From contig MTSL01000178.1 in NCBI GenBank assembly GCA_002794465.1, positions 54,025-86,024 of the forward strand: a stretch of DNA of 32,000 nt, written 5' to 3'. The notes under the pieces were generated by a model that was not told where the DNA came from, searched no databases, and saw only the letters and a program-made list of their open reading frames with translations. Source of the stretch: Paramicrosporidium saccamoebae KSL3 (lineage: Eukaryota; Fungi; Cryptomycota). Made by a program: the position numbers and the translations under genes. Below, piece after piece: positions 227 through 32,000 of the stretch (position 1 is its first letter; every line of letters begins with the position of its first letter).

Positions 227-1350
227 CTAATAGATTGGTATAAAGTGGTGAATGTTTTCCTTCTGCTGCTGGGCAATACACTCGGCAATCCAGACAATGT
301 TGCGAATTTCTTGCTCCTTGAGCTTTACCCACGCATAGAAAGGACACATGCTGAATTGGTACAGCATCGCATCTTTGCACATGCTAACCTCGCGCTCAAA
401 AAAGTACTCTTCCAACGACCGCACCCCCGCATCTAGTGTACTGGCGGTCATGTTCATCTTGCCGTCATCTTTCTGATTTGACATGGCAGCATCTAGCAGC
501 TGTCGGTACTCGGGACACTCGGCTTCCACAATAGACTTTACCTGCGTCAATTCTTCCGCATTTGCCAACTTGAGCGAGACACCCAGTTCATGCAGTCTTC
601 CAAATTTGGGGAGCAATGCAATCTTAGTCTCTCTAGGGATGCTGGTGCCCAGAGAATTGATAATGACATTTAATGTACGGCGGTCTGCTTCGTGAGCCAG
701 TACCATACCCATCACTTCTGCCGTGGTGCTATCGCATTGGCCACAGAAACGATTGAAATCCTCCAAATACGCTCGGTGCAAAGTGTTGCGGATAATTTCT
801 ACATTAAAGTCATCCAAGTCCTTGGCCTTCAGACATTCCTTAAAGTATGGCGCAAGGGGCGTCTCCACCAGCACCGTGTTGTACAGCTCCTCCACATTTC
901 TGGCAACTGTCAAGGCGGGCAACGCCTCGAACAGACCCAACGGATGGCACCGTTCAATCAACTCTTCCGTTGTCGCCGACTCATGCAACATGGCAGTGAT
1001 GAGAAAGACGACATTATCAATCTGGTATTCATAGGTAAGATAGGCGAGGAAGTGCGAAAGGGCACCCGTGGCGTTGGCCTGGAGGTAACGAAACTCTTCA
1101 ACAAAGTTGCGACGGAGAGTGGCGCTGAGAATGGAGGTGGTGATGGGGGAGGGAAGGGAGTGCGTGAGCTCACCGTACTCGGTGCCGTTCAGTTGTACCT
1201 TCAAGTCTACAGTGTTATGGCAGTCGCAGCATTACCTTCAAGACTCTCACACTGGCAAAAATTATTATACTGGGTAGAGTTAATTATCCCGAGACGATAT
1301 CCCCGCACAATGGCTTCCATGAAGCCGTGTTCCGTATTGAAAAGGAGCAT
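227..1350 (-). CDS. VMA6: V-ATPase V0 subunit d
   Basis: Exons 1350-1236 and 1206-227 with a 29-nt GT-AG intron at 1207-1235; 364 aa. MLLFNTEHGFMEAIVRGYR, RCHPLG, VLVETPLAPYF and KLKEQEIRNIVWIAECIAQ match the Vma6/ATP6V0D family. Confidence 0.96.
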
Positions 1351-1940
1351 CTTCCAGGTGGGGCTGCTCTGTAGCAGTAAAAGAAAACAACGGGGCAAAC
1401 GGCAAGCTACTGGCCAATCAAATTTGAATTGGGTTATTTAAGAACCGGGAATCAGCATGCAATGAACCAGGGATGAAGGTCCGTATAACCATTACTTGCA
1501 GAAATAACGAATGCTGGCATTTTTAACCATCTTTGCCTTGAATAGAATCAGCTGTACATTAGATGTGTCTGATTGATCTATCATGTATCGGGGATTTCAA
1601 TGGCGCGAGGTTAGGTAATACCGCGTACTTTATTTGAGCGGCAAGGGAACCCTTCTTGATAAATGGTGGGCCGATCCGCATTTAAGGGATGATAACCCAT
1701 GATTACAACAGGATCAGATAAAGGAACCCACTCACCGATGCGTTCTACCCCACGAAGGCAGCTCCTGTCAAGTGGATGCGATAGTAGTTCCTATGGTACA
1801 AGAGCCTTTTACGTCACACCTCTTACTAATTAAACTGTATTTGTAGTCTTACAAATCAGATGGTAAACGATTCCCACAAAATGGAGCCTTTTCCCTTCCA
1901 ATTGGTTGGCTTCAAGCTCAAGAATTTACTAATTTGTGAA

Positions 1941-3110
1941 TTATTTGTAAAATTCGTAATCGTGATCTCGCTTCTTGACATGAGCTTCGTATCCCTTTTC
2001 AAAGTCTTGCTGTAGAACCATGTAGCGATTCTTGCGAATGGCCTGCATACCGGCCTCTTGGCAAATGGCAGAAATGTCAGCACCGCTTAGCTTATCAGCA
2101 CGGGATACAAAGTCTTCCAAGTCAACCTCCTCAGACAGACTCATTTTGTTTGTGATTGTTGTAAAAATAAGACGTTTCTGACGACGATCCGGCATGGGAA
2201 ATTCAATCTTACGGTCAAGACGGCCAGGACGGAGCAAAGCCGGATCAATAGTATCAGCCCGATTTGTCGCCATAATAACCATGACGCTGCTTGTTTGGTC
2301 GAAACCATCCATCTGGTTCAGCAACTCTAGCAAGACACGCTGTACTTCGCGGTCAGCCCCAGTTTGGGCATCAAAGCGTTTCGTGGCAATGGCGTCAACT
2401 TCGTCGATGAAAATGATGGTGGGAGCCTTCTCCCGAGCCAGACGAAAGACATCACGCACCATTCGAGGACCTTCACCGAGGTACTTTTGCACAAATTCAC
2501 TTCCGTTGATCCGGATAAAGGCAGCGGTGCTATGATGGGCCACTGCCTTGACGAGCATAGTCTTGCCTGTGCCAGGCGGACCGTAGAGAAGAACACCACG
2601 AGGGGGGTCGATACCTATTTGGCGATACAGTTCGGGATGTGTAAGGGGTAGCTCGATGGCTTCACGAATCTCCTGCTTCTGTTGGTCCAGACCTCCAATG
2701 TCGCTGTATTGGACTTCTGGGCGTTCAGAGTCGCCCAGGACTGCAATGGCACTATCAGCCTCTGGGGGAAGTACGTCAACTAGAGCATTAGAGTGACGGT
2801 GCAAGGCAACAGTGGCACTTGGCTTAAGTAGCTCACGGTCCACCGTACTCAAAATCTTTACAATATGATTGCTACCGCTGGTGGAGGAGACAATGGCAGT
2901 TTGCTCGTCAATGGGCTCCAAGAACTGGCCAATAAGTAGCGGCACAGCTTTGATGCGCTTCACCTCCTCTTGAGCATGTAGTAGCTCCCTCTTCAGGTTC
3001 CGGTACTCGTCCTTAATGTACTCTTCTTGCAAATTGAGCAATTCAACTTGACGCAGAAGCTTCTTGTACTCCATGTAAAGGTCTTGCTCTTCCCCATTGC
3101 CTGCCATCAT
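1941..3110 (-). CDS. RPT3: 26S proteasome AAA-ATPase subunit Rpt3 (PSMC4)
   Basis: Intronless. N-terminal coiled coil ([26 protein letters not shown]), Walker A GPPGTGKT, Walker [19 protein letters not shown]-terminal EFYK. First ATG at 3110 (or 3107); the track start at 3146 is not ATG. Confidence 0.97.
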
Positions 3111-3230
3111 CTCGAAACAATTTAATAGTTGTTCGTTTCGTTTCAAGATCTATCCACTGGCATCGACAAGGTATTTTAGAAATGAATTTAGTTTTAGATA
3201 TTTGGCGGGCTGAGTCGATACACGGAAAAG

Positions 3231-4397
3231 ATGGACTTTATCCTTGACAGCGACAGCGACTCGGTGTACAGCCCGCACATAAAGTCGCGCCTTCCTGTAA
3301 AGTCTTCAGTCACCAAGGCGATCGCCAGCAGCTTCCAGCAGACTTTGAAGACGAGCAAGGCGGATTTAATGGAGGCATATCAAAAATTGGAGACTCCCAA
3401 GATGGTTTCGCGAGTAGACCGGCATTCAGGGTTTGATGCGAGTCGGGACCGCATGAAGTTGGCGAATATTATTGATTCAGAGACCAATGGAGACGACACT
3501 GATAACATGTTCCTTCTTCCCATCACTATGCAGTCACTGGTAATTAAGGATTTGTTTGTCTAATGGTTAGGAAGAGTATGAAAAGAGCAAGAATACACAG
3601 ACACGCAACTCGTTTGAATTAGATTTGAGCGGCATCTCTGATGCTGAAGATTTGCTGAGTGAATTTACCACGTCGAATGTAAGAAGACCACATCATGTGA
3701 TTGAAACCTCCCCCAATTCCATGTCCGAATCTGGCTATGCCAAATTGCTTCAGCTCGATAGCGAACAGTCCACACCGAAAATCAAGGCCATTAGAGAAGA
3801 GTTGGATCAAAGTAAGACGCGCTTTCGTCAATCCATCAACGACCTCTTGAACAGCAGTCCCATCAGTGTATTACAATACGAAAGACTAACATTTTTAGGC
3901 TGCATCATTAGAAAAAGCCCCCGACTTTAAAGACTTGGTAAAGATGGGAAGCAAGTTGAGTGAAAAGGTCTACAGTGAAATTGAATCTGTTGAAAAGCGT
4001 GCACCTTCCAATTTTGTACTCCGGACAAATCCAATCCAATGCTCTTCTCCCATTCAGCCCAAAAAGGTAACACGCATTAGTAACTCACCTTTAGTTGAGT
4101 ACTGAAGAGTTGCTGTCCTTTAGTGAAACTAATGATGCCACTAAGACCAAGGTTGACGAGCCGACAGAAGTAGAATCAAAATTCTCAATTTTTATGGGGA
4201 GGATTCTGTGGGCATTTTCCGTGATTGCACTCATCTTTGTGGTCGATGTACTTCTCCAGGTAGCGGTAACTCGTCAGCAGGCTGGGCTGCCTTTGTTTGA
4301 GTATGAGCCAGCTCAAAAGTGGATAAGTGTAATCGAAGAATTCTGGCACGACATGTATTCATGGGTTTCTGGTTTTAACACGATCGCCCCTCACTGA
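3231..4397 (+). CDS. Unknown 358-aa protein with one transmembrane helix near the C-terminus
   Basis: Three track ORFs join in frame through phase-0 introns 3540-3570, 3868-3898 (CTAAC branch point) and 4067-4094. Acidic, Ser-rich N-terminal part; hydrophobic segment ILWAFSVIALIFVVDVLLQVAV. No family recognised. Confidence 0.7.
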
Positions 4398-4717: not shown

Positions 4718-5471
4718 TTATACTGAACGTCGTCGTGAGAGAATCTGAGCAAATATGGCTCGCAGCTGAGTATCATGTATCCCTTGATCACACGATTTAA
4801 AGAACTCGTCCAAGTTGATTTCGTATTTGTGCTCATATTCCATCGCTTGCTGAGCAAGCTCCAATTTATCCATATCGTGAACGAAATTTGCCTCGGGTGT
4901 TTCATTGCGTTCGTATTCCCACCACAGAGACTCAATCTTATTGGCGGCATTTGTAGTTCCCAAGCTACTCACAATCTTTTTCATTGCGTCCTACACCGAT
5001 TAGGCATGCAGTATGGATACTGTCTCAAGACGGTGCTTTTCCTCTTTGTCGATGCCACACCATGGGGTAATGTCGCCAACTATTGATTCGGCCAGATCGT
5101 GGACGAGCGCCATCTGGCCACATCTATTCATGTCCAGATTTGGAGACTCCAACACCATTGACATTAGACCCATCCTGTACATGTGTCCCGAGACAGTCTC
5201 AGAGTCCTTCAAATTATAGTATTCCCAGCCACGACGCTTAGTCTCCTACAAGTTGGATAGGCCTGAGTCAAGTGGGAACTTTGATTAAGTGTCCGTATTT
5301 GAAAAAATCAACAAACTGTTCAGCCGTTGGATAGCCGGTGCGCCGAGGCTGACTCATTTGCGCTTTGAGCAGCTTTACTGCCTCTTGGCATTGCTCCGGT
5401 GATTCTGCTGTCCGTAGTATGGCCATTATGCCTTCATCGAGTTGCACCGTAGCCATTTGTGCGGTCGGCAT
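4718..5471 (-). CDS. HDDC2: HD-domain 5'-deoxynucleotidase (HDDC2/YGK1 family)
   Basis: Exons 5471-5280, 5245-5021 and 4990-4718 with introns of 34 and 30 nt. Motifs FFKYGHLIKETKRRGW, ETVSGHMYRM, VHDLAESIVGDITP, LWWEYE, DMDKLE. Start may be 5471, 5456 or 5426. Confidence 0.9.
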
Positions 5472-6387: not shown

Positions 6388-7769
6388 ATGTTTACACCGA
6401 GGTCAACACCCTCACACTCGCCATTGCTGAAGGATGGCTCTCCAGAATCATTATTCAGTGACATGAACCTGACAATCTTGCGACAGCTGATGAATGATTG
6501 TGATGTTTCTGGTAATCTTAGACTCTCAGCGATGGATATTCTGCAGAGGGGGTCGGAGAGATTCCTCCTCCATGACCAGTATTTGGTGCACTTGATGTTG
6601 ACAGCTCTAGGCTAGATGTTAGGGAAAAGGCACAGTCACTCATCAAGAGCATTTTAAAGGAAAATCGTGCCTCTACTCTGCTATTCGACTCGCTGACTAC
6701 TTCCCGCCATGCGACCACTTTCATGCGTTCCATCACTGCAGGCTTCCTTCGTTTCCTGGGACAGGATAGTCGGCCCTACGTCCAGATACTGGCGCTGCTA
6801 GCTTCCGAGACTGGCCGCGGCGAATTGCTTGGTGCATCGGTGCTGAGTAGATTGGTGGCGGGGCAGCCGGAGCTGGTGCAAGGAATAGTATATGGCCTGG
6901 TTAGGACAATCCTGGGTGCAGAATATTGTCCCGTAGCTGGCGCAACATTGTCCTTTGTGCTGGAGCATCCTGAATCGAGGGTTTTGGGATGTGAAATGCT
7001 GATGCATGCACTCCTAGAGGATGCCCAGTTGTCAGAGAGGTTGCACGAGTTTTTGTGGGAGAGGTTGCTGATGGGGGATCTGATGGCCGAGTTTATTCTC
7101 TTTCGTATTCTTCACGGAAGTGAAACTAAAGCTATTTGCATCGGCAAGACACCTTCTAAGCTGGTCAAGTTGACAAAACTGATTCGAAGCGATTTCGCGA
7201 CTCCAGGAAAATACCCAAATGTTTATCTGCACCTTTGCTTGTTGCACACTGTCCTCGACAATGAGGAAACATTAGGAACCCTCTCACAGGCAAACTCGCC
7301 AAAGCTAGAGCTCAAAGGATGGTTCAGTCCCAGGCCTGTCGCTGAACCAGATCTCGAGTTTGTGCTGTGCGCTCTGTTGGACATACTAATTGAAAACTTG
7401 AACAGCCAGCGGGATCTCTACCAGCACTCAGTGGTGTCGGCCATTCTGACAAATATTTTTGTTGATCAGGGGCCGCGTTGCACGGAAATGATAATGGAGT
7501 ATCAAGAAAGGTAACAAACTCGATGACAATGTCCAACGTTATGTAGACTGCGCGAGTGCTCTATATTGCTGCCCGGAAATGTAAAGATTGACCTGGACAG
7601 GATGGTTGATTTGTGGGTGTCCAGTGCAAGCATGACATGCCCAAAGTCACCGGTGATAGCAAGCAGAACGAGGCTGCAGGAAGAGAGTTCATCTGCAGCT
7701 TTCTTCCTTCCCTTAATACACGCCACGCTCTTCCAGCTGCTAAATCAGAACACAAGATCAATTTATTAA
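6388..7769 (+). CDS. Unknown Leu-rich alpha-helical (HEAT/ARM-like) protein, at least 439 aa
   Basis: Track ORFs join in frame via introns 6579-6604 (26 nt) and 7511-7546 (36 nt). The 5' end is unresolved: it could extend to ATG 6261 via a 31-nt intron at 6402-6432. No family confidently recognised. Confidence 0.6.
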
Positions 7770-7822: not shown

Positions 7823-10800
7823 TCACACAGGAGAGTGCATTCCGAGTTTGGTGTTGAATTGTAGCTTTGCGCGCTTCTCTGATCGTTCCGTTTCAACATG
7901 CCAGAAATACTTTACAGTCTCGTTCGATCCCAATGCAAGCAATACAAGAATAGCAACTTGTACCAGCGCCATGGCTAGACCTTGTATTTCTTGGACAAAC
8001 AGTGTCACGATGCAGATTGACAAAAGCGATAGTAACATCAAATACGACCAGTATGCATGCTGACAAAGTCCAAATTGAATGAGTGGCAAATGAACATGCA
8101 GACACGTGGCCGACATGGACATTACTGCAACTGAAAGTGCAGCTGGCACAAATGGTTGGCTAATCAACCTAGATGCACAAGCTAGAATGGCTCCGTTCAT
8201 AAATGATCGGATCCCGTAAATATTTCTGACGGATTGTTGGTATTCAGGATCCCAGGCCTGCTTGGGCATTAGCCTTAAAATATTGGGCTCGTAAGGCGCA
8301 AACATAAACTCGATCACGGTAGCAAGTACAATAATCATCATGGAACCAATCGAAGCAATTGATATTCGTCCCATTAATAAGCCGATAGCCAAAGATTGGG
8401 CCATGCATAGAGCGTAGAGGTGGGCAGAAGTTGTTCCACGAGCAAGACACCGAGCCTCTCTGATGATTTCCGTCAGGACATATGGACTGCAATCAAAAGG
8501 GATAACTATGGGACAGGTAAGCGAAGTCAACGCTGCTGATAGATGCATAGAAGACATTTTGCCAAACTGGGTCGGCTCCCGAAGGTTCTGGGGTTCCATC
8601 CCTATGGAAGTTTTGGTGCTTGCAAATACTTCCGAGTTTCTCCAATTGAGCGTAGACCCCACAGAAATTACAACTCTAGCATTCTCTGCATAAATGCTGT
8701 TCATCTCCACGACTGACTGGGGATCACATTCGGCAAAGAGTGATATATTCAAGGGAATGTCGTCGACGTCGGCCAGATGGGGACGGATGTTGTATACCCC
8801 GCGAGGCAATTTGGATTTGGGATCGGTAAAATCTGGCAGTGCAGCATTAGTGCCCTTTGACAGAATTATACAGCTATTCCAATCAGTCTCTAAACCAAGA
8901 CGATCACCAAAGGCTTTTGTAATGCTCTCCGAATAGGGCGAAAAGTAAACAAAACGTATCCCACTATTCTCCAAATCGTCAATAAGCTCCTGCATGTCCT
9001 CTTTTGGGACGTAGCCTGAAATCAAAACTCCAAGAAATATATGTCCGCGGGCAAACTTGGCAATATCAGAATTGTTGGCCTCATCCGAGGCGGAGACAAA
9101 ATTGATCAAGTGGGGAGATTCCTTGAAGTGGGGAAGTTTACATCCATCCTCCACAATTGGCTTGTACGACATGCCAATACATTGAAGATCAGAAGCCGCC
9201 AGATTGTCGTCCAATTCAATCAATTTCTTCCTCAGCGTGTCGCCCATTTTTTCAATCACTCGCGAGTTCCAAGTATAGCGGCAAAGACAGGCGGCCGATG
9301 TCAAATCTCCAAAGGAAAACATGTGCATTTCATTGCTGCTTTGGTCACGAAATATCCTCGAAAAAAGCCCTTGATATTCAATGGGCGTCAGGGTTGTTGA
9401 TATTCCCACGTCGCGTATAATCCAAAAATCAAGAACACGGCTGTAATTGTTGATGGCTCTGGCATGAAACCCCAGTTCACGAGAGACTGTGCAGGTGCAG
9501 GTTCGGAAAACTGGATCCAGCTTTCGACCGGGATGAATGCTCCAAGGAAACCGAACATGCCAATCACGACGGAATTGCCCATGGTGCACCCCACATGAAG
9601 CCGAGACAAGAAGTGACAGTCCTAAAGCCTTTAAATCCTCATCGGTTGCCCTTGGGTCGGCATAATTTGTTCTCATCAAATTCAAATTAGAGGGATCCAT
9701 GATGAATTCTCCAAATGCAAGTTCTCCCTCAGCCTCAGGACTAGGAAACACCACTTCCATGGGAACCGGGAATGACTAAAATTTAATCCAAAGGCGCGCT
9801 CATACATTAGCAATTGGGCCTTCGCGATCTAGAAATGACAAAACTGAGACTGACGAAAAAGACTCGGTTAGATCGTACTGCCAAAATAAAAAGTGTGAGA
9901 GATTCTGCTGGAACGCAGACTTGATGGTCCTTAGGATGTCGAGTGGATTAAGATAGATATCCTTGGTTGGAGGTGGGGCCTCTTCATCAAATTCATCGAC
10001 ATCCTCCGCCTCCAGATAGGGCGTCTTTGACTTTTGAAGCACTTCGGTTAGTGCAATAAGGCGTGCGTTTCCGAAGCAAAAAAAGAGCATGGTCCAAATG
10101 GGAGATACTAGAACAAATGAAATGAATAGGCCCACAAGCATTGATTGGCAAAAGGCATTATCCTGCACACCAATGCAGCACAAAAAGAGTGTCAGAGCGG
10201 CTATGAATATTTGGCACATGTACAACCATCCTGTGACTGGCTGCAGGCTGTTCTTCCAAGGATTGTCGATCGAACAAAGGAAAGAGGACACTTCCAACTG
10301 GCGCTGAAGGGGAGTCTCCATAACCTCAAATAGATCAGTGGTCATCCCTGCAATGTCTCTCTTTCGACATGAAATTCCAAGATCATCTCCAGGTGAAAGC
10401 TGAAACGTATCGCCCTCTACAAGCAAATTGACTGGCAATAGTCTCCAATTGCCATCTCTAAGGACCCTTACGAGATTAATAGCCCGACTAGGCGGCTCCT
10501 GGACCTCGCCGTACTCCATGCCGCGTTGGACAAACTCGTCATGGATCCTCCTTAGTCGATCGGGGATTTCTGCAGCACGAGACAGCAAAAAGAGCTTCCC
10601 AATGAAAAACTCGAGTGCTGATACGACCATAAGCGCAGATGTGGTCAACAGAAACCAGCGTTTTCCTTGCGGCAAGGAGAGTATGACGATAGCAACCAAG
10701 GTGCATGCGCGTCTCCAATCTCTCTTTGAGCACGGAGGTTTGCATTTGACAGCCGCCTTCAATGCACCGAAAATTGTCTTCTCCAAAATACTACACTAAT

Positions 10801-10934
10801 CAATAACCTCTGCATACAGACCTGGTAGCATCGGAGGTATATGTGGATGGTATATGATCGCGCTTCTTTACAGGACGACCGAGTTTTACAGAATTTCGTT
10901 TGGAAGCTGTGTGTGGGGACTTGCCATGAACCAT
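7823..10934 (-). CDS. TMEM94: TMEM94-like protein (degenerate P-type ATPase fold)
   Basis: Intron 9776-9805 plus a first intron at 10791-10821 (ATG 10934) or 10791-10817 (ATG 10831); about 1000 aa. Actuator-like RVLRDGNWRLLPVNLLVEGD; GIRFVYFS...LGLETDWNSCIILS; KLPRGVYNIRPHLADVDDIPLNISLFAEC; C-terminal TM bundle. These match TMEM94/KIAA0195 as I recall it. Confidence 0.82.
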
Positions 10935-10940
10935 TATTTA

Positions 10941-11887
10941 TCATTTACTCTTTGATAAGCCTCTAAAACTATGAGGGTGCTTGTAAAGCTGCCATGTGAG
11001 CGTCACCGGTAGCCATTTGTCTAGTTTATATAAAGAGGCACTGGACAGATCAAAGTCTTGCATTTGGAGAGCGTCCAAATATTGGGCCGATAATTTGGCT
11101 GGGAGAAAGATCCTCCGCAAGAGGGGGTGCTTGGGAGATGCTTTTTCCATATACTTTTCAGCATGTGACAGGTGAATGTAGGCAGTATCCGCCATATTGT
11201 GTATACAGTTCCGTGGTCCTTCCTCTGACCAAATGGCATCTTGTTTCAAGGATTCTTGTGATATTCCTGCTTTGGATAGCAAGCTCATCGGAATACCCGA
11301 ATCTAGGCCTTTGCGGCTGAGAGAGACGGCGCTTTTAATAAAAGCTACAATTCCCAGTGCCTTTCCCACATGAGACGCAACATGATCAGCATCCAAATCC
11401 TTGATTCCGCAGTACTCTAGTAGAATACACAACAAATTAGAAAACGTCTTCTCAGAGTAATTTTCAATCTCAGACATGTCAAAGTACACGGGCTTTGTCA
11501 GATCATTCGTCTAGCCGATATTAAACATTGGAGGTGTGTACCTTTGCGTCAAGGAATTGACGCAGTCGGAACTGTATGGTGCCGTGTCCGGAGCTGTACA
11601 TGTTGAGAATCGATAAAATTGGATTGTCCATTTCCCTGTTCTAAAATTATGCCGGAAATATGTCATACATTCATTAGGCCATTTTCCCAAAACTGTATCC
11701 GGTTCAGTGACAAATCTAGTCTGGTACTGGTTGCTTTTATGCGAGCAGCCTCGATATTGAAAGCTCCCAGAGCAAACTTGAGGGTGCATACATCAGGTGG
11801 GAGATAACCTGCACAGAGATAATCCAAGTAATCATTCCTCTTTACGAGACTTTTGCAATGGTCGATGGCCGCCTTGGAAACTTTCAT
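10941..11887 (-). CDS. NDUFAF6: Complex I assembly factor NDUFAF6 (squalene/phytoene synthase fold)
   Basis: Exons 11887-11669, 11640-11542 and 11510-10941 with introns of 28 and 31 nt; 295 aa. HCKSLVKRNDYLDYLC, FALGAFNIE, RIQFW, ENYSEKT, ADHVASHVGKALGI, MADTAYIHLSHA. Confidence 0.85.
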
Positions 11888-19485: not shown

Positions 19486-20596
19486 CTATTTATGTTTCAC
19501 GATGGGAGGGATCCTACGAATAGCCTTTACCTCGGCAATCTCGGCCCAATCTTTGGTTAGAGTAAAGATGGTTGCCTCACAATCAAGCTCATTAATCTCT
19601 GTTAAGACGCGATCATGCTCGACTTTCATCTTGTCTCTGCGAAGCTGGGCCTTATTGGCAGTTTCCTGGAGAGCCTCCAACTCTTCACGTGCCACCTCCT
19701 ACAACGTTATAACGACAAAATAATGTACAATCTCGCCAATGAGCGCCTCAGTCTCCTTGGCTTGGTGTGTGTCGCTTTCTTGCCTCAAAGTACAAATGCG
19801 TTTTAAGAGATTCTGACGTACGTGGATCCGGTGGGATGACATTTCCAGTTCATCTGCCAAGTCGTAAAAAGAATCTAGACAAATAAATAAGCGGCTCACT
19901 TGGTCAGTACCATTTACTAGATCCAACAGATCCTCTCCCGGCTGCCGCGGCGCCTGGTTTTGTGCAGGGACTGCAGAGACTTTTCGTATTGTGACTTGTT
20001 TAGGTCCAGCCGTTGAACCAAAGCCCTGTAGACCAGGAGGTTGCATCGGAGACCTAATTGGAGGCCTTGCCATGGCGGCCTGCACACGTAAGTCAGGATA
20101 TGCCAAATTTGGAGCTTTTGCGGCAACCGGAGGTGCCACAAGCGATTCTCGCGTCAAATAATGTACAAAAATTAGGCGATTATTGGGCAGCATCAAGCGG
20201 TATTCCAATCTTACAAGATTTGGAGGCCCAGCGGACTCGAAGCGGGCGATTTCCAAGGTCTACGATAAGAGAGACAACGGTCTATATTACTTGATTGCCA
20301 AAGATTTTGTTTGATACGTCCGGCAGCTTCTTCCATTGATAGCCATCTGGCGCTCGAAAAGAATTATTTTCAGGACGAACAAGCAGAAAGCACTCTCCGT
20401 TCTTTGGGTGTTTCAAGATGACCCAGTGGAAACTCATTCGAGAAATGGCCTCACGGGCTTTGTTCAGAAGCATGACTACGCGGTCCATTCCAAGGGGTTG
20501 CGTAATGATAGGATAACGTATACTGGCCATGTAGTGCAGCTCGTTCTGCGCCATGCCTGGTATAGGACGCACCGCCGAATTGGTGGGAAATGCCAT
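19486..20596 (-). CDS. SSR4: SWI/SNF-RSC subunit Ssr4-like (DUF1750) protein
   Basis: Introns 20260-20290, 19875-19910 (in frame, inferred) and 19699-19728; about 337 aa. HYMASIRYP, HPKNGECFLL, DGYQW and YRL...LIFVHY resemble the Ssr4 N-terminal domain, followed by a Pro/Ala/Gln linker and a C-terminal coiled coil. Confidence 0.65.
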
Positions 20597-20830: not shown

Positions 20831-21434
20831 ATGGCTGATTCTCTCAAGTATTGCCCAATCTATGCCCCCGTGCTTGGTTCCATCGGTATTGCCTCAGCCA
20901 TCATCTTTTCCTGTAAGGCGCTGACAGAGTTGCTTATATTCTAGCTCTTGGTGCTGCTTACGGCACTGCCAAGGCAGGACTGGGCATTATTAATGTCAGT
21001 ATTACCCGTCCTGACTTGATGATGCGTTCTGCGATGCCTGTCATTATGGCCGGTATCCTCGCTCTCTACGGAGTGGTAGTTGACGCTATTATTCTCACCT
21101 CAAGTAAGCTTTGGCCTGTTTTGTTCTGATTTTTGCTAGTGGACCGCAGCACATATTCCCTCTATACGTAGTCCTGTTGGGTGGATGTAATAACTGTAGT
21201 GGTGCTATGCATCTTGGCAGTGGTCTTCTTGTGGGATTCAGTGGTTTGGCTGCGGGTATTGCGATTGGAATCGTTGGTGATGCTGGTGTACGAGGAGTGG
21301 CTCAACAGCCGCGTGTATTCGTGGGAATGGTGCTCATTCTAATTTTCGCCGAGGTGCTTGGTATTTATGGCTTTTTCCTGGGCATTATGATGTCCCACGT
21401 AGGAACCAAAGGTATGGGCTGTAGCAATGCGTAA
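20831..21434 (+). CDS. VMA3: V-ATPase proteolipid subunit c
   Basis: Exons 20831-20912, 20945-21103, 21140-21167 and 21200-21434; 167 aa. [38 protein letters not shown] and FAEVLGIYG with the proton-carrying Glu. The Vma11 paralog is not fully excluded. Confidence 0.93.
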
Positions 21435-21522: not shown

Positions 21523-23760
21523 ATGGACGGCTCCCGGGTCCATATTATGGAGGCGCGTCTTCCTGGTGGCGTTCCTTCGTTCCAAATTATAACTGAAAAT
21601 GAGCAGCGGATATCGCCCCCTTCCAGTCCGAATGCTCGCTCGCCTTTTCTAGAGGAAGTCTTTCCTTGCGAATGCCGTTTCGTCGACAGTTGGCCGTACT
21701 GCCTTTGCGTTGACCTGTGTAGACGCGAATGATCCGGAAGCCCAAGCGTGTGGAGAGCGTTCTAATTGTATTAATAGAACGCTATCGATTGAGTGTAATG
21801 CCGACGATTGTCCGTGTCGGGATAATTGCCGAAACCAAAGGTACGTCCAATGGAACTCTTGGTCATTCTGGCAGATTTCAAAAACACCAATTCGCCGACG
21901 TGGAAGTATTTGAGACGCCAGGAAAAGGCTTTGGTCTTCGCACTAGACAGGACCTGGAAGCGTGAGACTAGGCGTCTGACTTGTACTAAGTTGTAGGGGC
22001 CAATTTATCATTGAATATGTCGGCGAAATTTTGAACCAAGAACAGTTTGAGGAGCGCTCCGATATTTACACCGACCGAGGCCAGCGTCATTACTACTTTA
22101 TGACCCTGCGAAATGATCAAGTACACCTCTTCGGCGTGTAATTGATTGATTTTAGGTGATTGACGCCACCAAGAAGGGAAATCTTTCAAGATTTATGAAT
22201 CATAGCTGCAACCCTAATTGTGCTACACAGAAATGGATTGTTTCTGGTAGATTGAGGATTGGATTGTTCACTCTTCGTCGCATCAAAGCCAACACCGAGT
22301 TGACCTTTGATTACAAATTCATCCGATTTGGTGCATCAGCGCAGAAATGTCTGTGTGGCGAAGAAAACTGCAAAGGAGTGATAGGAGAGGAACAGAAAGA
22401 GTCACGTCCAGTAGCAGTTAAGAAGCCCACCTCACAGCAGGAAGAGGATGATGCCAACATGGCACTAGAACGTTTCACTGGTGAGCTGGGTGTTGAAAAC
22501 TCGGAAGACATGGCCCTGCTGGCGAGATTGCTGTTGAGGACTGAAGACTTGGAGGCAGTCAATCCTCTCATCTGGACGCTAACATTAACTGAAGATCCGG
22601 TTTTGCTGAAAAGATTTGTTTCACTTCACGGACTACAGATTATCAACGTTTTGCTAGGATCCCATTGGAGAGATCCAAAGATTGTATCGGCAATGGTTTT
22701 AATTCTCTCCAAGCTTCCCGTGGCTAGTCGAAACTCTCTCGAAGATGCCCACATTGAGGACAAAATTGCACGGCTAATCCAACGGGAAGATTTGTCTAAG
22801 GAGACTATTGAAGCGGCCAAAAATCTAGTTGAAAAGTGGGCTTTACTTGAGCACGTTTTTAGAATCCCAAAAGTGGCTGTTGAAGAGCCAAAGGCTGCAC
22901 CCGCGATCCCAGTTGCCGGATACTCTCTATTAGAAGACGGCGCCCGCTTCAAAAAATCGAAATGGACAGGGACGGCGGCTGCGAGTGAAAGAACTGCAAG
23001 CCTGCCGCTCGGTTCCTACAACCCAGTGGGCTGGAGAAAGGCACGAGCTCCTGACGGCCGCACATATTATTATCATGAGCAGACAAGGGAAACGAGATGG
23101 GATCCACCAGCTGGTCATCAGACAAGGGAAGCAAGATGGGATCCACCGGCTGGTCATCAGTCAACCTTTGACGGTACGCACGCAAGGGAGAATCATTCTT
23201 ACGAAAAGCGCGACCATCGTGAGTATGATAAAGAACGGCATGGTAGCAAGAACGTTGATCCCAAGCCTTTAGATCAAGAAGTGCGACTTCGAGAAATAAT
23301 CGAGCGAGCAAAGAGCGCTGCACTGTCTAGAAACTCCCTCGCAGTTGATCTTGGCAATGGCAAGACTGTGAACGGAGACTGTACCTCTGGAGACAATTTG
23401 CGTTGGCGTCAATTTGAGAACCAGCTTTGCGAGCAAATCTCTCATATAGTTGTAAAGTACATGAGTCGATGGTGCCGAGACCAGATTCTTTCTCCAGGTG
23501 TTTTTAAAGAGACAGCCCGTAAGCTCACTCATCGGATTACTGAAAAGGAACTGCGTGCGTTAAAGAAAGAGTACAATCTGCCTCCTTCAGACATGAGCGA
23601 AAGTGAGTTGATATCCGGCCAAAAGAAGGCCAAGATAAAGACGTATCTTGCGCAATACCTGAGAGACCATGGCTATCGGGTTGAGGAGGATTCCACTTCC
23701 CTTGTGGCTTTGAGTTCGACTTCAAGCACGAAAAGTTCATCTGTTGCTCCGCCGAGCTAA
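21523..23760 (+). CDS. SET2: Histone H3K36 methyltransferase Set2
   Basis: Introns 21689-21722, 21841-21874, 21962-21996 and 22121-22155; 699 aa. AWS cysteines, [23 protein letters not shown], post-[13 protein letters not shown] domain and SRI-like C-terminus. Confidence 0.95.
23080..23160 (+). repeat. 39-nt coding tandem duplication at the end of the SET2 WW domain
   Basis: cagacaagggaaacgagatgggatccaccagctggtcat (23080-23118) followed by cagacaagggaagcaagatgggatccaccggctggtcat (23119-23157): [13 protein letters not shown] / [13 protein letters not shown]. Confidence 0.95.
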
Positions 23761-23856: not shown

Positions 23857-25849
23857 CTATTCCTTGGGGTCTGTAGATGCTTTGGCCAAATTGCGTTGCT
23901 AGACTCATGAGTGCACAGTCTTATACAATATATACCTGTAGCATCAGCAAGAGAGCACTCATTTGTGCCATCAAAGTATTCCCGGGTGACGATGACTCTT
24001 CAATGGTAGACTTTCCACCCTGTTGGCAATTGTTTTTGATGGCCGACGTGCTATTTTGGGCATTAGTATAGGGAGTGGCAAGATTTTCCTTTTCCTCAAA
24101 TACAGTACAGTGACCAGTCATTTGTGGAACTTGATCTACAACGCGTGGGTTTGCCGAACCGGGCATCACAACGTGTTGTTCTTGGGATGCCGAATCCAGT
24201 AAAGACGGTGTCTTTTCCCTATTAATTTCGCCAGGAGCAGCATCACCGGGATATCTCTCAACGCGGCGGATGTCTTTACTAGGTGGAGATTTGGACCTAC
24301 TTCTTAGAGTCAAAAGTTCCGTATCAGGACTCGACTTTTTATCCCCGAATCGTTGAATCCCAGAGCTTAATCGCCGGTCGTGGAGCTCCTCGGCGGCTGG
24401 ACTCGGCCTCTTTTCATAAAATCGCTCTACACCAGGACTTGGCTTGTTCCCATAAGACTTTTCTTTTCTTTCTAGATCAGCTCGGATTTGATTGGGAATC
24501 GCTCGCATGTCGCGAGGATAATCCCAAGAAAATCTAATGGAGAGCTTACCACCTTTAAAAGAGTTTCCGTTCAACGACACGTATGCAGATTGGCAGTCTC
24601 GTTCATCGAAGAATTCCACAAATTTTTTGTTTGATATCCGATGAAAATCACGCACACCCTTGATGTCGCCGTGCTTTCCAAACAGCCTCTTAACGTCGGC
24701 ATTGGTGTAGGGATAAGTTGTGTTTTGAATGCAAACAATAAGGGTGCCTTGGTGCTTATCTTCAGAGCAGGGCCCGCTCACTTCATCCTTCCATCTTGGT
24801 AGAGAAAAATGCAAATCCCACTACAACATCAATCTCAATCAAGTGGCAATAGAACCTTTCTTCCCATCATAGCAAAGCCCTGGAGTTCCTCCTTGGCCCG
24901 TTCGGCGTGTCTTAGATCGAACTAGAAATCAGCGTCAAAAACTATATGATACATAGGAGACGAATACGAACCCTTTATCTTCAATGTGCTCATCATGGAG
25001 AACACGGATTGCTCCATATTTCTCGAGCACTCGGGATACTTGGGATTTTTCAGCATGCGCAGACACATTTCTAATAAAAAGCGTTCGACATGGAAGCTCT
25101 CTCTTGGCCCGTGACTTTATGAAATCCTGCTCTACCAAAGAGTTCCCGTCTTCTTTCTTGGTTGCATTGCCACATTGTTGAACATGTCGGGTTGAAGGAG
25201 ACTCGGAAACGTACTCGATCACTTGGGAGCTGCGACGAGAAGACGGAGAATCCTTGCGGGTTTGCTCCTCTCTCTCCAGTAAGATATGAGATTGAGGGGT
25301 ATGATACAAGAGCCCATGGTAGGCGTACACCGGTGCCGGCACTGGAGTAGAAAGAGGTGTCTGTGGGTGCATCGATGACTGATAGTTTGGATCATAAGCC
25401 CCCAGTTGTTCGTTGTAGAATCCACCTCGGCCATAATCAGGTGGGTGGTTTGTGTAGTGTGGATGAGCAGGAGCCGAAGGGTAGGCTGGCGGATAGCCAG
25501 CGGGAACAAAGTAGCGGTCATCATACCTCTCCACATCATATTCTGCACGTATGGATGCTGGTCCTCGGGGATCTTCGTGGTATCCTCGGTGATGCGCTCC
25601 GTAATTGTCAAATCCGGAGAATGCACCTCCTGGGTAGCAAGGTCCGGCTGGGGGACCTCCGTAGTAGAGCCCCGCTCTAGAACGCTCTTCTCGATGATAG
25701 TAATTGCCATAAGGGTCGCCCACATACTCCTGAGATGGGTGGCGAGGCACTTGCCGAGGATAATATCCCGTCTGATAAAGGTCGTCTTGGCTGCCGTAGG
25801 GACGTTGCATTTGCGAGGCTTTACGCTCCCAGGGTGACTTGGGAATCAT
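23857..25849 (-). CDS. Mei2-like RNA-binding protein with two RRMs and a Tyr/Gly/Pro-rich N-terminus
   Basis: Introns 24922-24952, 24821-24855 and 23899-23935; 629 aa. PCRTLFIRNV, GFVFVSYFDLRHAERAKEELQG, DLHFSLPR, HQGTL and KFVEFFDER match the Mei2-like RRM1/RRM2 pattern. Confidence 0.8.
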
Positions 25850-27564: not shown

Positions 27565-28383
27565 ATGGCAGATGATTGCACGCTACTGGATGGCTACGCG
27601 CTCTTCATCCAGTGCATTGTCGGTGTGTTGGCAGTTTCCAGTTTGTTTTTCAAGAGGCACATTGAACGGCCTCAAAGACCATGGATAGTCTGGTTTTTTG
27701 ACACCTCCAAACAGCTCTTGGCGGCTGGCGCCATGCACTTGGTCAATGTCTTGGCTGCGACCATTAGTGGAGAGAGCCAGCAGCGTCCAACAAACGAAGA
27801 CGCGTGTGTTTGGTATCTCACTTGGCTATTAGTCGATGCTACACTTTTATTGTTTCTAATGTCGGCGCTCTTGAAGATATTGCATGGCTTCGTTGAGCAA
27901 CGCAACATTGTCACACTGAGACATGGAGAGTATGGTGACCCTCCCAGATGGTCCATTTGGACCTTGCAGCTGTCAATTTATGCTCTGATTCTTTTCTCTG
28001 CAAAAGCAATCTGCCTTTACATTCTTTATCGGCATTCAGGCGTCTTTGTTAGTATTGCAAGATATATCCTGTATCCATTAGAAGGGCATCGGAGGCTAAA
28101 GTTGTTCACTGTGATGCTTATTGTGCCGCTAATTATCATGATATTCCAATATTGGCTTCTGGATAGTCTTATTATGGCCAACTGGCAACGAAGCACCTCG
28201 ACCGACTGGCAGTCCGTAGCAACAGAAAGTACTGAGGATGACTTAAGCAGATCTAATTCTATTCTAACAAAACGCTATGAAAAACAAATGGCCCGAGACT
28301 TGACGGAAAATCAGGGCGTCATACTGGACTACTTGCCGCGAGAGGCCCATTTCCATGCAGGCTCCTCACAAGAGGAATCCTAA
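27565..28383 (+). CDS. STIMATE/TMEM110 (yeast YPL162C, vacuolar membrane protein) family multi-pass protein
   Basis: CTLLDGYALFIQ, KRHIERPQRPWIVWFFDTSKQ, ACVWY, GEYGDPPRW, MLIVPLIIMIFQYWLLDSLI; five or more TM segments. Confidence 0.85.
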   Translation: MADDCTLLDGYALFIQCIVGVLAVSSLFFKRHIERPQRPWIVWFFDTSKQLLAAGAMHLVNVLAATISGESQQRPTNEDACVWYLTWLLVDATLLLFLMSALLKILHGFVEQRNIVTLRHGEYGDPPRWSIWTLQLSIYALILFSAKAICLYILYRHSGVFVSIARYILYPLEGHRRLKLFTVMLIVPLIIMIFQYWLLDSLIMANWQRSTSTDWQSVATESTEDDLSRSNSILTKRYEKQMARDLTENQGVILDYLPREAHFHAGSSQEES

Positions 28384-30065
28384 CGATTAGTAATAGATAC
28401 TCTGTACCTTGACCGATATCCCACAGGTTCCCAAGTTGACACGGAATTCATCACATAGCTGCAGCGTTTGCTGAGAAGCCTCCATGTTTCCTTCTTTCAT
28501 TTGGCTCAACCCAAGGGCTCTCACTCTGCTTCGAAACTTGATTGCTTCATCAATAACCAGACCTGATTCTAGTCGTGAACTCTGTAAGGCTTGCTGTGAA
28601 AAGCCAAACAAACCTAGCATTGAGCCGAGCTCGTCAATTGCGTGCATCAGAACTAGTGGGTGGGCTTCGTCGCCGTAGTTATCAATGTAAGCAGTTAGTC
28701 GTTTGGTAATATCAACAAATATTGGGCCTATCACCTTGGACCAATTGAAATCGCGACAAAGCTCCACTTGACAGGCTATACGAAAGTTGGAGATTCTACA
28801 AGGATCGTTATTACAATAAGGATGGCATACGCCAAAAGCACTTCTTTGTCCACAGTCGAAAACCGTCGCGCTATTGCAGGATAGTTTCGTTGATAAGCAT
28901 TGGTGAGGTTCTGGAGCAGATCCATTACCTCTTTTAGCTTCCTAGCGGCCAATGCCATCTTGTTCTCGCTATATTCCAAAGAATCACCATATTTGTGTAG
29001 GATGAATAGCATGCGTAGCTCAGCAGGCGAATGCACAGAAAGCGCATCCTACATGATTAGCGCCAAATCCATAGCAAGCCTTTATGGACACGTAATTCTT
29101 TAGGGATTTAGACATTTTTTCCTGATTGACGATCAGATGGCCTGCATGAGTAAAATGGGGGCACCAGGGAGAATCGCCATAAAAGCTCTCGCTCTGAGCA
29201 ATTTCGTTCTCATGGTGTGGGAACTCCAAGTCCACCCCTCCTGTATGCCAATCAATGTTTCTTCCAAACGCTGAATGGACTAAGAACAAGTCAGTGTCTC
29301 ACATACACGCCTGTACTGATGCTTGAACATTCGATATGCCAACCAGGACGGCCGAGCCCCCAAGGAGAGTCCCAGTATGGTTCCCCGGGTTTTGCTGGTT
29401 TCCACAGCGCAAAATCACGACGATCCGCTTTGGTAGCGGCGCTGACTTTTGTTTCGTTGCATGCACTAGATGGACGAAATTTTGGATAGCTATAACCCTT
29501 TTCCGTGTATCGAGAGATTGAGAAATGAATGCTGCCGTCCGGTGATTTGTAGGCGTATCCGTCTTCCAGTAGCCGGGCGATAAAATGGATAATGTCATCC
29601 ATGTGCTCCGATACTCGACTAAACTGCATCGGATGTGTGATCTAAAGTAAATGATCAAATGAAATTGCGATACATTAAGAGACTCCAATCCCTCAATGAA
29701 TTCGAGCTCAAATCGCCGAGATAATTCGTGGATTGTTTCGTTAGTCCGTGCTGCTTGCGAGATTATTTTGTCGTCCACATCCGTGATCCCCATTGACACT
29801 CGAACTTCCATTCCATAATGCTTTAATATCCTCTTCATTATATCAAAAGTCATGTATGTCCTATCAAAGCTGAGTAATGTGCAAATTTCATACCGCGCAT
29901 GGCCCAAATGGGGACTATCGTACACTGTAGGGCCACAAATATACCTTTAACATTAGCTCTCGCGTCACTCATGTACCAGTTTAATACACCTTTGGTCGAA
30001 GTTTGCAGCGTCTCGACCTTTTTGGTCAAAGAATTGTACACCTGGAACAGAGACGGAAATCGCAT
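28329..30065 (-). CDS. CARS: Cysteinyl-tRNA synthetase (class I), short type, 8 exons, 502 aa
   Basis: Introns 29945-29976, 29861-29893, 29642-29673, 29280-29316, 29049-29079 (GC-AG), 28796-28830 and 28380-28407, all with consistent phases. [13 protein letters not shown] (HIGH motif), [40 protein letters not shown]. Confidence 0.93.
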
Positions 30066-30099
30066 TGGCCCCGCCGCTCTGCAGACAAAGAAATCATTT

Positions 30100-31492
30100 T
30101 TATTCTACAACTAAATTGTAAGTTTCGGCAAGCGATTCTTCATCCTTTACAATCTGTTTCTCCAGCGGTACTGATGGAAAAACTAGGTCTCCACGCTCAG
30201 GGATGGTAGCCGATGGCGCCGTAGTCTGGATCATTTCTTCTAACTCTTTTTCCAAGTCTTCGTCGCTAGAATCGAGCATTCCATTCGGCTGTCCAAGAGC
30301 GGCAGAAATTTCTCCTTGTTGTATGAACGCTTCCTGAAGCAGTACTACGACATTGTCGACCTTTGAGACACTAAGATCATCTCTGGCGAGAATTTGTTTC
30401 AGTGTTGATTCGCCAGTTTTGTAGGCTTCATATATCTGCACATCCGAATGGGCGTCCGCAATCTTGAGGAGAATCTCATGAATCGTAGATGATGCTTGTA
30501 GTCTTTGATTCCTAGAGCTTTCGATAGTCTTAGATCTGCGCAGCTCGTGCAATGCCAACGAGCGATCATTCGTCTTTAGTGCTGCTATGGCAGCTTCCTT
30601 TGAGTCCTTAATTTTCAAGGCAAGCATGTGGAGTTGATCATCAAGGGAGGTGATAATATTCTTTAACTTTACAATGTTCGCTTCTTCTGGAGTAATGATT
30701 GGCGCTCTAGTTTCTCCAGGAAGTCTGATCTTTACAGCGCAATTTTCCAGGTTACTAGAGCTGGCCACAGCTATCATGTTCGTTTTTCTCATGTACTTTA
30801 AGAGCAGTTCAAAGTCGCGCTTATCATTGATCTTGCTCCAGCCTGCCCTTGACCGAGACTCTTGTACAATACTACAAAACTCCTGGAACGATATTGCACG
30901 AAGGAGCTGATCTTTCTTTTGCTCCCCATTAGCTCGGCTCACCAAATCGGCACACTCCTATACATTAATAGCAAATCTCGACTATACCTTTACAAGAACA
31001 TCCAGGATTAAAGGCCCACAATCAACAACCGTTTCAGGGACATCATTGTCTGCGGCATCAGTTCCAGAAACCCAGTGCCAACTCAAGGTCAGCGGTCCTG
31101 TAATGACAAGTTTCGCAAGTTTGCTGAGGAGAGAGGCCTCGCCTAGAGAGTCTCGATGTTCAGACTTTGCTAAACCTGTTTGCATGAGGTGATCCTATAA
31201 AGTTGATTTCATAGTCAGGGAAACATACCATCACATAGGCCACTCCAAGCGGTCTGTTGCCATTCCTGGAAAACAATTTGGCGACCAAAGAGGAGTCTGG
31301 AAGACGAAAAACACTGTTGTCGCAGAGACCAAGTCGAGTAGCGTTGAGCATATGTTCCTTCCAAAACAGTAACTTTGAGTCAAACGACTCGGGATTCACA
31401 CTCCTTGGTTGGGAGAATGAAGAGAACAAGCTCCGACTGCGTTGTTCATCCATCCATTCTGGCAGAGAGTTAAGGTATTCTTGAAGGTTCAT
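30100..31492 (-). CDS. CHMP7: CHMP7/Chm7-like ESCRT-II/III hybrid protein
   Basis: Exons 31492-31229, 31194-30988 and 30957-30100 with introns of 34 and 30 nt; 442 aa. SLFSSF...NPESFDSKLLFW N-terminal domain plus a Snf7 coiled-coil domain (ALHELRRSK, YEAYKTG, DEDLEKELEEM). Confidence 0.85.
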
Positions 31493-31572
31493 GGCCTGGG
31501 CGGCACGGGTTTGCCGCTGTGAGCTATTCGGTTCGGCTACCGCGGGCGACTTGGTCTGATACCGTGGGATAA

Positions 31573-32000
31573 ATGTCGATTCAAGCGTACACGGTGTGTG
31601 TCTCGGTGCCACCTATGGTTCGCATGGAGCTTTATAATTTATGGGTGAATGGGAACTCAGGTTGTTAACTATCAAAATTAGTGCTAATGTTCAGACAAAC
31701 AGGCATTGTCAACTTGGAAGAATATTTCCGAAGAGGATGCTACTCATGTAGAAATAGTTGTGGTCCAGAACCAATTCAGGCTCTACGAATCTTTAGAATC
31801 ACTACTGCGCAGACCAAAGTATTTTATGGGGCAGCGTTCGTATTTTCCATTCTCGGCTGCCCTCAAATTGTCTCTGATTGGAGGATACTTTGCTTTGGAT
31901 GAAGCCGTCGTCCGGGAATTAATAGGGAAGAAGCTCATCGGTAAAACCCGGCGTGACTTGGATGATATCAGCGAGCACACATTTGTACCTCTCGCCAGTT
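31573..32000 (+). CDS. FIBP: FIBP (acidic FGF intracellular-binding protein) homolog, 5' part, truncated by the window end
   Basis: Missed by the ORF track. Exon 31573-31660, intron 31661-31694, exon from 31695. ELYNLWVNG, QFRLYESLESLLRRP and YFALDEAVVRELIGKKLIGKTRRDLDDISEHT match FIBP (human [29 protein letters not shown], from memory). Confidence 0.85.

Follow-up and report, generated by a model that had tools for sequence, protein, structure and literature searches.

Are the short segments that interrupt conserved reading frames across a 32,000-nucleotide stretch of the Paramicrosporidium saccamoebae KSL3 genome genuine spliceosomal introns and, if so, why are they so nearly uniform in size? 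The stretch (contig MTSL01000178.1, positions 54,025 to 86,024 of the forward strand; hereafter the window, with positions counted from its first letter) is compact and eukaryotic in character, with a GC content of 46–47% and housekeeping genes on both strands. Its intron-free N-myristoyltransferase (NMT) gene matches a protein on this contig in assembly GCA_002794465.1. We recognise 24 genes in the window, 15 of which contain introns. Between positions 1207 and 31694 we curated 36 introns, comprising 35 with GT-AG ends and one with GC-AG ends (Table 1). We consider it highly probable (roughly 0.88) that these are ordinary U2-type spliceosomal introns which, within the window, appear to have been miniaturised to a narrow and near-minimal length of 28–37 nt. 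P. saccamoebae is classed in the Rozellomycota (NCBI taxonomy); the genome paper, in which the genome carries the accession MTSL00000000 and a transcriptome was sequenced too, places it as sister to the Microsporidia (PMC5701793).

The gene richest in introns lies on the minus strand between 28300 and 30200, where the removal of seven short GT/GC…AG segments yields a cysteinyl-tRNA synthetase (CysRS) of 502 amino acids (aa). An earlier reading of this DNA, made from the letters only and hereafter called the sequence-only reading, had also placed its maximum of seven introns in this gene. Aligned with animal, archaeal and protist homologues, the spliced product is ungapped at all seven junctions and possesses both the HIGH and KMSKS motifs. 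The seven segments were checked using a custom aligner of proteins to spliced DNA, in which the intron penalty is flat between 15 and 600 nt so that short introns are not favoured. Introns 1 to 5 were returned identically by five of six distant homologues; the sixth, which aligns only from intron 3 onwards, returned introns 3 to 5. Two and three of the six homologues, respectively, returned introns 6 and 7. Recovery of intron 5 was achieved despite the higher penalty that the aligner places on GC donors.

Searches with NMT and a 645-aa open reading frame (ORF) yielded uncultured relatives whose proteins are 48–71% identical. Gene order along their metagenomic contigs is that of the window; the samples concerned are JGI 3300037657, Logan SRR11844784, SRR12926096, SRR28640813, SRR21707646 and SRR28204431, and ENA ERZ27237304. 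One of these, relative A (L003, L009 and L010), covers nearly the whole window, while L006, L008, L011 and L012 are more distant. Within CysRS, the relatives carry introns at the same codons and in the same phases, with unrelated sequences and other lengths. Because CysRS introns are cleanly absent from some relatives, their boundaries are fixed. The GC donor of intron 5 recurs in L006, which has a 42-nt GC-AG intron at this site; the corresponding intron of L008 is a 38-nt GT-AG intron.

Across the window, 29 introns could be compared with syntenic relatives. At least one relative has an intron at the same codon and in the same phase for 25 of them, again with unrelated sequence and a different length. 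The other four are cleanly absent from relatives, one of them (g8 intron 1) being an uncertain case in which an intron of relative A can be seen nearby by eye. For the seven introns outside this comparison, full-length matches were restored for V-ATPase c (PDB) and for RRM_1 and CG-1 (Pfam). At the same positions in the relatives the flat-prior aligner yields introns of 28–63 nt and, since it returns such lengths, it is not biased towards introns of 37 nt or fewer.

The expectation that removal of these segments restores conserved reading frames was borne out, with Pfam and PDB matches complete after splicing and homologues aligning through the junctions. Upon splicing, the Pfam score of V-ATPase subunit d against vATP-synt_AC39 (2-337 of 339) rises from 250.9 to 280.6 bits, that of the actin-related protein against Actin (2-409 of 410) from 289.5 to 378.9 bits, and that of Set2 against SET (1-105 of 105) from 57.9 to 95.4 bits, with the AWS domain of Set2 also complete (1-39 of 39). 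Single stretches are obtained for HD_3 in the HD-domain gene (4-150 of 165), for SQS_PSY in the SQS_PSY-family gene (3-261 of 263) and for RRM_1 in the RRM gene (1-69 of 70), the last spanning both introns. Spliced V-ATPase c aligns with yeast subunit c (3j9t_Y) over residues 3-160 of 160 and contains two full ATP-synt_C stretches in Pfam. Similarly, single-ORF homologues of g8 (943–1116 aa) align through its 30-nt intron at 9776–9805, with P0243, P0244 and P0245 running straight across the junction.

The window was also scanned for the pattern GTA…YTRAY…TAG, with YTRAY placed 6–13 nt from the end and reading frames ignored. In the 26–37-nt bin, 24 matches were found on the sense strand and 6 on the antisense strand. 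All other 12-nt bins between 18 and 85 nt gave 2–6 sense and 1–7 antisense matches, and first-order Markov sequences gave an expectation of 8.5 ± 3.2 matches for both strands together. Curated introns account for 18 of the 24 sense matches and nested alternative donors of curated introns for a further four.

The splice signals are unequal in strength. The 5' site reads A/C-A-G|GTA and is degenerate beyond this (~5.7 bits), the donors of the 36 introns being GTA in 29, GTT in four and GTG, GTC and GC in one each. At the 3' site (~7.1 bits), 33 of the 36 introns end in TAG and 27 have T at position -5. A YTRAY-like heptamer is present in every intron (variants include CTAAT, TTGAC, CTGAC, TTAAT and ATAAC), with the putative branch A usually lying 6–13 nt ahead of the 3' end. 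The motif is found ~20–25 nt into the intron, and 5'-to-branch distances span 11 to 28 nt. Retention would introduce a premature stop in 35 of the 36 cases. Seven introns have a length divisible by three, in a small sample with biased detection, and six of these contain an in-frame stop; CysRS intron 2 reads through. At the level of sequence, membership in the U2-type class is indicated by the GT/GC–AG ends, the branch motif, the restoration of proteins and the positions shared with relatives.

The inventory is based on reciprocal spliced alignment between the window and its relatives, with difficult 5' ends inspected by eye and spliced products compared with Pfam and PDB. The curated lengths have a mean of 32.2 nt and a median of 32 nt (n=36), and the introns are poorer in GC than the window as a whole (39% versus 46.5%). 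They are scattered through the coding sequences without 5' bias, with junctions from aa 6 to aa 486. Nine of the 24 genes are intron-free, namely Rpt, RPS9, the 130-aa ORF at 11996–12388, RPA49, DnaJ, Rev1, a 91-aa gene, NMT and STIMATE. The resulting density is 1.5 introns per gene (36 introns, 24 genes), close to the ~1.6 of the sequence-only reading and, as that reading had proposed, far above the density of canonical microsporidia. Its first (1207–1235) and last (31664–31694) introns were found again at identical coordinates. Its count of 39 was similar to ours, but some of its probable calls fail the comparison with relatives, for instance a pair of 26 and 37 nt that joins the upstream 130-aa ORF to the actin-related protein gene; likewise, the narrow size class that it described as 26–37 nt holds except for the lower bound, our shortest intron being 28 nt. 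Five further introns, of 30–37 nt, occur in flanking genes for Tfb4, a proteasome subunit and a WD40 protein, and an HYOU1-type HSP70 gene in the flanks is intron-free.

How the introns came to be so short is suggested by the relatives. At 20 positions shared with relative A, introns average 37.2 nt in the relative and 32.3 nt in P. saccamoebae (Wilcoxon p 0.004). The corresponding means are 44.4 versus 33.8 nt at 11 positions shared with L006 (p 0.001), 46.0 versus 32.0 nt at seven shared with L008 (p 0.016) and 49.3 versus 32.3 nt at three shared with L012. P. saccamoebae thus lies at the short end of a graded series of intron lengths. These comparisons support a lineage-specific miniaturisation in P. 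saccamoebae, and because the relatives keep the same introns longer, the shrinkage would be recent as well as specific to this lineage. Some introns are present in relatives only, namely one in the FIBP gene after aa 94 in three relatives (L003 8120-8156, L006 8091-8127, L008 6432-6477) and one in relative A in the actin-related protein (Arp) gene after aa 71 (L009 7012-7052), where P. saccamoebae has none. Since the relatives hold introns that are missing in P. saccamoebae, intron loss is continuing beside shrinkage. The proposal that introns shrank before being lost is directly supported by these data, given that orthologous introns are longer in four syntenic relatives and that the surviving microsporidian introns are equally short.

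A bolder reading is that the graded series formed by Paramicrosporidium and its uncultured relatives (~50, 45, 37 and 32 nt at orthologous sites) would show an intron-rich ancestor in the course of miniaturisation, shortly before introns and spliceosome were lost wholesale in microsporidia. P. saccamoebae would then possess a streamlined spliceosome that removes introns of ~30 nt efficiently, with minimal recognition of the 5' site, reliance on a branch-site/3'-site module, a ceiling on length and nonsense-mediated surveillance. We advance this tentatively, and consider it rather doubtful as a whole.

As to mechanism, we infer intron definition, in which the spliceosome recognises each intron as a whole. 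Most of the information would reside in a compact branch-site/3'-site module, with the 5' site adding little beyond GTA. Intron length would lie near the steric minimum for simultaneous engagement of the 5' site and the branch site. The narrow distribution would most likely be the product of deletion-biased shrinkage under genome compaction, halted at this lower limit.

The sequence-only reading had instead suggested that the introns are defined mainly by distance. On such a view, a fixed 5'-to-3' spacing would be measured and sequence signals would be near irrelevant. The very narrow range of lengths and the low information of the 5' site are both in keeping with this idea, as is the recovery of only 18 of the 36 introns by the strict motif alone. 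However, the spacing from branch site to 3' end and the TAG acceptor are clearly conserved, and the introns still spread over 10 nt in total length and over more in 5'-to-branch distance. Furthermore, the relatives carry the same introns at 38–63 nt, which implies that other lengths are tolerated by the machinery of this clade, and a 120-bp intron has been noted in the S23 gene of P. saccamoebae itself (PMC6349667). Definition by distance is therefore unlikely; the branch-site and TAG signals are clear and nothing shows that distance is measured, although length may add specificity.

The introns might alternatively be real but poorly spliced relics of a decaying system, as in Encephalitozoon cuniculi. 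They are equal in size to microsporidian miniature introns and their 5' splice site is degenerate, and the short introns of E. cuniculi are spliced at low levels (PMC6349667). Set against this are a density of 1.5 introns per gene, positions conserved across at least four species, and the premature stop that retention brings in all cases but one. If each of seven introns were removed with an efficiency below 20%, a correct CysRS mRNA would almost never be made. We regard poorly spliced relics as distinctly improbable. Because essential genes hold up to seven introns and retention is nearly always nonsense, splicing of ordinary miniaturised U2-type introns in P. saccamoebae would have to be efficient.

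Segments called by hand also invite the suspicion that a frame-repairing GT...AG segment can always be found and that the narrow range merely reflects the expectation of the caller. There is some substance to this concern, since each strand of the window offers more than 2000 GT-AG candidates of 18-70 nt that link frames, and a longest-ORF dynamic program does select wrong, too-short 'introns'. That program, run with and without motif penalties, favours the shortest link, misses in-frame introns and resolves CysRS incorrectly, and it was used as a seed only. A Viterbi gene finder based on codon usage was dropped, the coding signal being too weak, with the result that most genes were missed or everything was spliced through. 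Yet length-agnostic homology alignment gives the same calls, and the same aligner finds longer introns, up to 63 nt, in the relatives, which share positions and phases while differing in length. In addition, the frame-blind scan shows a sense excess solely at 26-37 nt. An artefact of hand-calling is thus already refuted by the homology alignment, the motif scan and the relatives, and retains a negligible probability.

Least credible of all is that the interruptions are frameshifts or stops arising from assembly errors or decaying pseudogenes: the public models are indeed fragmented or fused at these loci, but every interruption has GT/GC...AG ends and a branch-site motif, the metagenomes of related species, assembled independently, are interrupted at the same codons, and the genes concerned include essential housekeeping functions (CysRS, V-ATPase c and d, mitochondrial S16) whose exons are otherwise conserved.

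Several considerations weigh against the interpretation of the 36 segments as a uniform class of miniaturised U2-type introns. Splicing itself, and its efficiency, are deduced from sequence, and the steric minimum and deletion bias proposed for the mechanism draw on what is generally known about spliceosomes and compact genomes. The sample consists of the window and its flanks, ~40 kb of one contig. Introns in untranslated regions (UTRs), and stop-free in-frame introns of poorly conserved genes, escape the methods used, and longer UTR introns are thus possible. The boundaries of g14 intron 2 and g8 intron 1 depend on frame and motif only. Given the 120-bp intron of the S23 gene, the 28–37-nt class is not universal genome-wide.

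Comparable intron systems are known. Among microsporidia, E. cuniculi has 36 introns of ~25 nt, the short ones being spliced at <20% (PMC6349667), and Ordospora has 28 with a mean of 31 nt (PMC6944219); microsporidian miniature introns overall measure ~23-52 nt (PMC6349667, PMC6944219). The introns described here resemble these in their GT-AG ends, essentially equal length, branch site near the 3' end and residence in a related, compacted genome. They differ in a density (~1.5 per gene) that is roughly a hundred-fold higher, in their degenerate 5' site and in their host, which belongs to the Rozellomycota and not to Microsporidia proper. Introns of the E. cuniculi type number a few tens per genome, the first 16 to be described lying mostly in ribosomal protein genes right after the ATG, whereas 36 are spread over 32 kb here, with no enrichment in genes for ribosomal proteins (RPS9 has none). 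The inefficient splicing seen in E. cuniculi also contrasts with the efficiency that P. saccamoebae would require.

Outside this clade, Paramecium tetraurelia reportedly possesses tiny introns of ~20-34 nt, an observation credited to Jaillon and colleagues in 2008. As in Paramecium, there are many introns per gene, with very narrow lengths near a lower limit and retention that nearly always produces a premature stop. Paramecium is, however, an unrelated lineage (a ciliate), and its introns are shorter (mode ~25 nt) and AT-rich. A Paramecium-like depletion of lengths divisible by three (seven of 36 here) is statistically unestablished and may partly reflect the way in which introns were detected. 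The nucleomorph of Bigelowiella natans is said to have introns of 18-21 nt, as Gilson and colleagues are understood to have described in 2006. There too introns were miniaturised and not lost during genome reduction, and remain at high density; they are shorter than those of P. saccamoebae, span a 4-nt range and reside in the nucleomorph of an unrelated lineage. Many fungi have intron length modes of ~50-60 nt. With such ordinary introns those of P. saccamoebae share the U2-type, the YTRAY branch site near the 3' end and, probably, intron definition; they are about half as long, with almost no tail in our sample, and the syntenic relatives bridge the two states.

The available portions of the genome paper and its supplements mention neither introns nor splicing (PMC5701793). 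Literature searches on Paramicrosporidium intron length, short introns and the spliceosome retrieved nothing but the remark about a 120-bp intron in S23. The DNA itself is publicly available and intron systems of this kind are known; none of the literature searched describes the present one or its intron sizes.

Table 1. Curated introns of the window, followed by those of its flanks (L001 in window-extended coordinates). Numbers after gene names give the intron and the total for that gene; lengths in relatives are in nt, and (=) marks the same codon and phase.
Gene, intron	Positions	Strand	Length (nt)	Features and support	Relatives
V-ATPase subunit d, 1 of 1	1207..1235	-	29	phase 1	cleanly absent in relative A (L010), alignment continuous
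g4 (unknown protein), 1 of 3	3540..3570	+	31	phase 0; GTAATT...CTAAT...TAG	relative A 35, equivalent position
g4, 2 of 3	3868..3898	+	31		relative A 46 (=)
g4, 3 of 3	4067..4094	+	28	frame restored	absent in relative A
HD-domain (HDDC2-like), 1 of 2	5246..5279	-	34	GTT donor; HD_3 continuous	relative A 40 (=)
HD-domain (HDDC2-like), 2 of 2	4991..5020	-	30		relative A 43 (=)
g7, 1 of 2	6579..6610	+	32		relative A 36 (=)
g7, 2 of 2	7511..7546	+	36		relative A 28 (=)
g8 (~1016-aa P-type-ATPase-like membrane protein), 1 of 2	10791..10821	-	31	GTC donor; weaker call; links short ATG exon (start 10934) to ORF 10790-9806	relative A intron in region by eye
g8, 2 of 2	9776..9805	-	30		relative A 37; none in L011, L012
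SQS_PSY-family, 1 of 2	11641..11668	-	28		relative A 39, L012 47 (=)
SQS_PSY-family, 2 of 2	11511..11541	-	31		relative A 38; absent in L011, L012
Actin-related protein, 1 of 2	12437..12473	+	37	phase 1, after MTFVA	relative A 42, L012 57 (=)
Actin-related protein, 2 of 2	13532..13563	+	32	actin C-terminus restored	absent in relative A and L012, continuous alignment
Mitochondrial ribosomal protein S16, 1 of 1	16615..16646	+	32		relative A 32, L012 44 (=)
g14 (CG-1-domain protein), 1 of 2	20260..20290	-	31	Pfam CG-1 23-115/116 across junction	
g14, 2 of 2	19699..19728	-	30	in-frame stop removed; GTACAT...TTATAAC...GTAG; motif and frame only	
V-ATPase proteolipid c, 1 of 3	20913..20944	+	32	spliced-protein PDB alignment	
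V-ATPase proteolipid c, 2 of 3	21104..21139	+	36	spliced-protein PDB alignment	
V-ATPase proteolipid c, 3 of 3	21168..21199	+	32	spliced-protein PDB alignment	
Set2, 1 of 4	21689..21722	+	34	GTT donor	L006 45 (=)
Set2, 2 of 4	21841..21874	+	34		L006 43 (=)
Set2, 3 of 4	21962..21996	+	35	GTG donor	relative A 45, L006 42 (=)
Set2, 4 of 4	22121..22155	+	35		relative A 44, L006 61
RRM (Mei2-like), 1 of 2	24922..24952	-	31	RRM_1 continuous	
RRM (Mei2-like), 2 of 2	24821..24855	-	35	GTT donor; RRM_1 continuous	
CysRS, 1 of 7	29945..29976	-	32	phase 2; 5 distant homologues	relative A 37, L006 42, L008 48 (=)
CysRS, 2 of 7	29861..29893	-	33	in frame, stop-free; 5 distant homologues	relative A 35, L006 49, L008 41 (=)
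CysRS, 3 of 7	29642..29673	-	32	6/6 distant homologues	relative A 35, L006 39, L008 42 (=)
CysRS, 4 of 7	29280..29316	-	37	6/6 distant homologues	L006 46, L008 46 (=); absent in relative A
CysRS, 5 of 7	29049..29079	-	31	GC-AG, donor GCTTGC; 6/6 distant homologues	L006 42, L008 38 (=); absent in relative A
CysRS, 6 of 7	28796..28830	-	35	2 distant homologues	relative A 31, L006 40 (=); L008 without
CysRS, 7 of 7	28380..28407	-	28	TACTAAT branch site; 3 distant homologues	relative A 40, L008 63 (=)
CHMP7, 1 of 2	31195..31228	-	34		relative A 34, L006 39 (=); absent in L008
CHMP7, 2 of 2	30958..30987	-	30		relative A 33; absent in L006, L008
FIBP-domain gene, 1 of 1	31664..31694	+	31	GTT donor	relative A 29, L008 44 (=)
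Flank L001	33630-33666		37		
Flank L001	33808-33837		30		
Flank L001	37418-37451		34		
Flank L002	20741-20771		31		
Flank L002	20485-20514		30		

A number of candidates were rejected during curation. Those returned by the aligner within uninterrupted ORFs were taken to be gap substitutes, at 3318–3338 (21 nt), 6437–6458 (22 nt, GC donor), 14717–14734 (18 nt), 15905–15919 (15 nt) and 18891–18932 (42 nt), together with 17291–17434 (144 nt), which falls in a low-complexity Rev1 stretch. A 33-nt motif match in RPA49 (14178–14210) was considered to be due to chance, the ORF being continuous and aligning through in relatives. A longer CHMP7 N-terminus, reached across an intron of 37 or 43 nt, was discarded, as the relatives and the public start favour the ATG at 31492. 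Fusion of the ORF at 11996–12388 to the Arp gene via introns of 26 and 37 nt was likewise rejected, the preferred model being a short MTFVA first exon followed by a 37-nt intron that relative A and L012 share. This 130-aa ORF (+ strand) encodes a hydrophobic N-terminus and is conserved in relative A, with an HDKFNIADGF motif; no Pfam match was found for it. It is apparently a separate gene, merged with the actin-related protein in the public annotation.

Genes in the window are very tightly packed. The SQS stop codon lies ~5 nt from the ATG of the next gene (10934-10943, minus strand), and the 3' ends of CysRS (minus) and STIMATE (plus) overlap convergently by ~55 nt (28329-28383). The spacer between V-ATPase d and Rpt (1351-1940) measures 590 nt, versus ~250 nt in relative A, and contains a strong branch-site/3'-site motif (TACTAAT...TTTGTAG) at 1813-1846 on the plus strand. 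No convincing ORF and no Rfam match were found in this spacer, which could hold an unannotated small gene or a non-coding RNA. Rfam and tRNA scans of the whole window found nothing.

The public gene models were compared with the curated genes. For all 15 intron-containing genes, either the public product has another length or the protein collection lacks the exact spliced sequence, and an exact look-up of ten spliced products in that collection found none. PSACC_02835 (28329-31492, minus strand) fuses CHMP7 with CysRS, skips the exons encoding HIGH and KMSKS and, in its CHMP7 part, uses introns of ~60–70 nt that delete conserved residues. A public 645-aa model (within 7823-11887, minus strand) corresponds to the C-terminal two-thirds of g8, the N-terminal exons of which are fused to the SQS model. 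No public gene is called for Set2 (21523-23760, plus strand), and the public NMT model begins 26 codons after the start of the 433-aa NMT ORF. Mitochondrial S16 and Rev1 are joined in one public model (16327-19475, plus strand). Straddling the S16 stop, upstream of the Rev1 ATG at 16800, is a well-formed 37-nt intron-like segment (16736-16772, plus strand; GTATGT...TTAATAC...CTAG). This segment may belong to the 5' UTR of Rev1 as an intron, or it may have caused the fusion.

Public models mishandle many of the tiny introns, with fusions, skipped catalytic exons and one uncalled gene. Inferences of gene loss towards microsporidia make wide use of the P. saccamoebae proteome, which probably needs to be re-annotated with a small-intron model. 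The case would also put ~28 nt as a lower bound for efficient intron removal by a fungal-type spliceosome. The loss of introns and of the spliceosome is classically exemplified by microsporidia. A sister lineage that carries ~1.5 introns of microsporidian size per gene suggests that miniaturisation preceded loss, and relatives in which the orthologous introns are longer support this order of events and provide a tractable comparative series.

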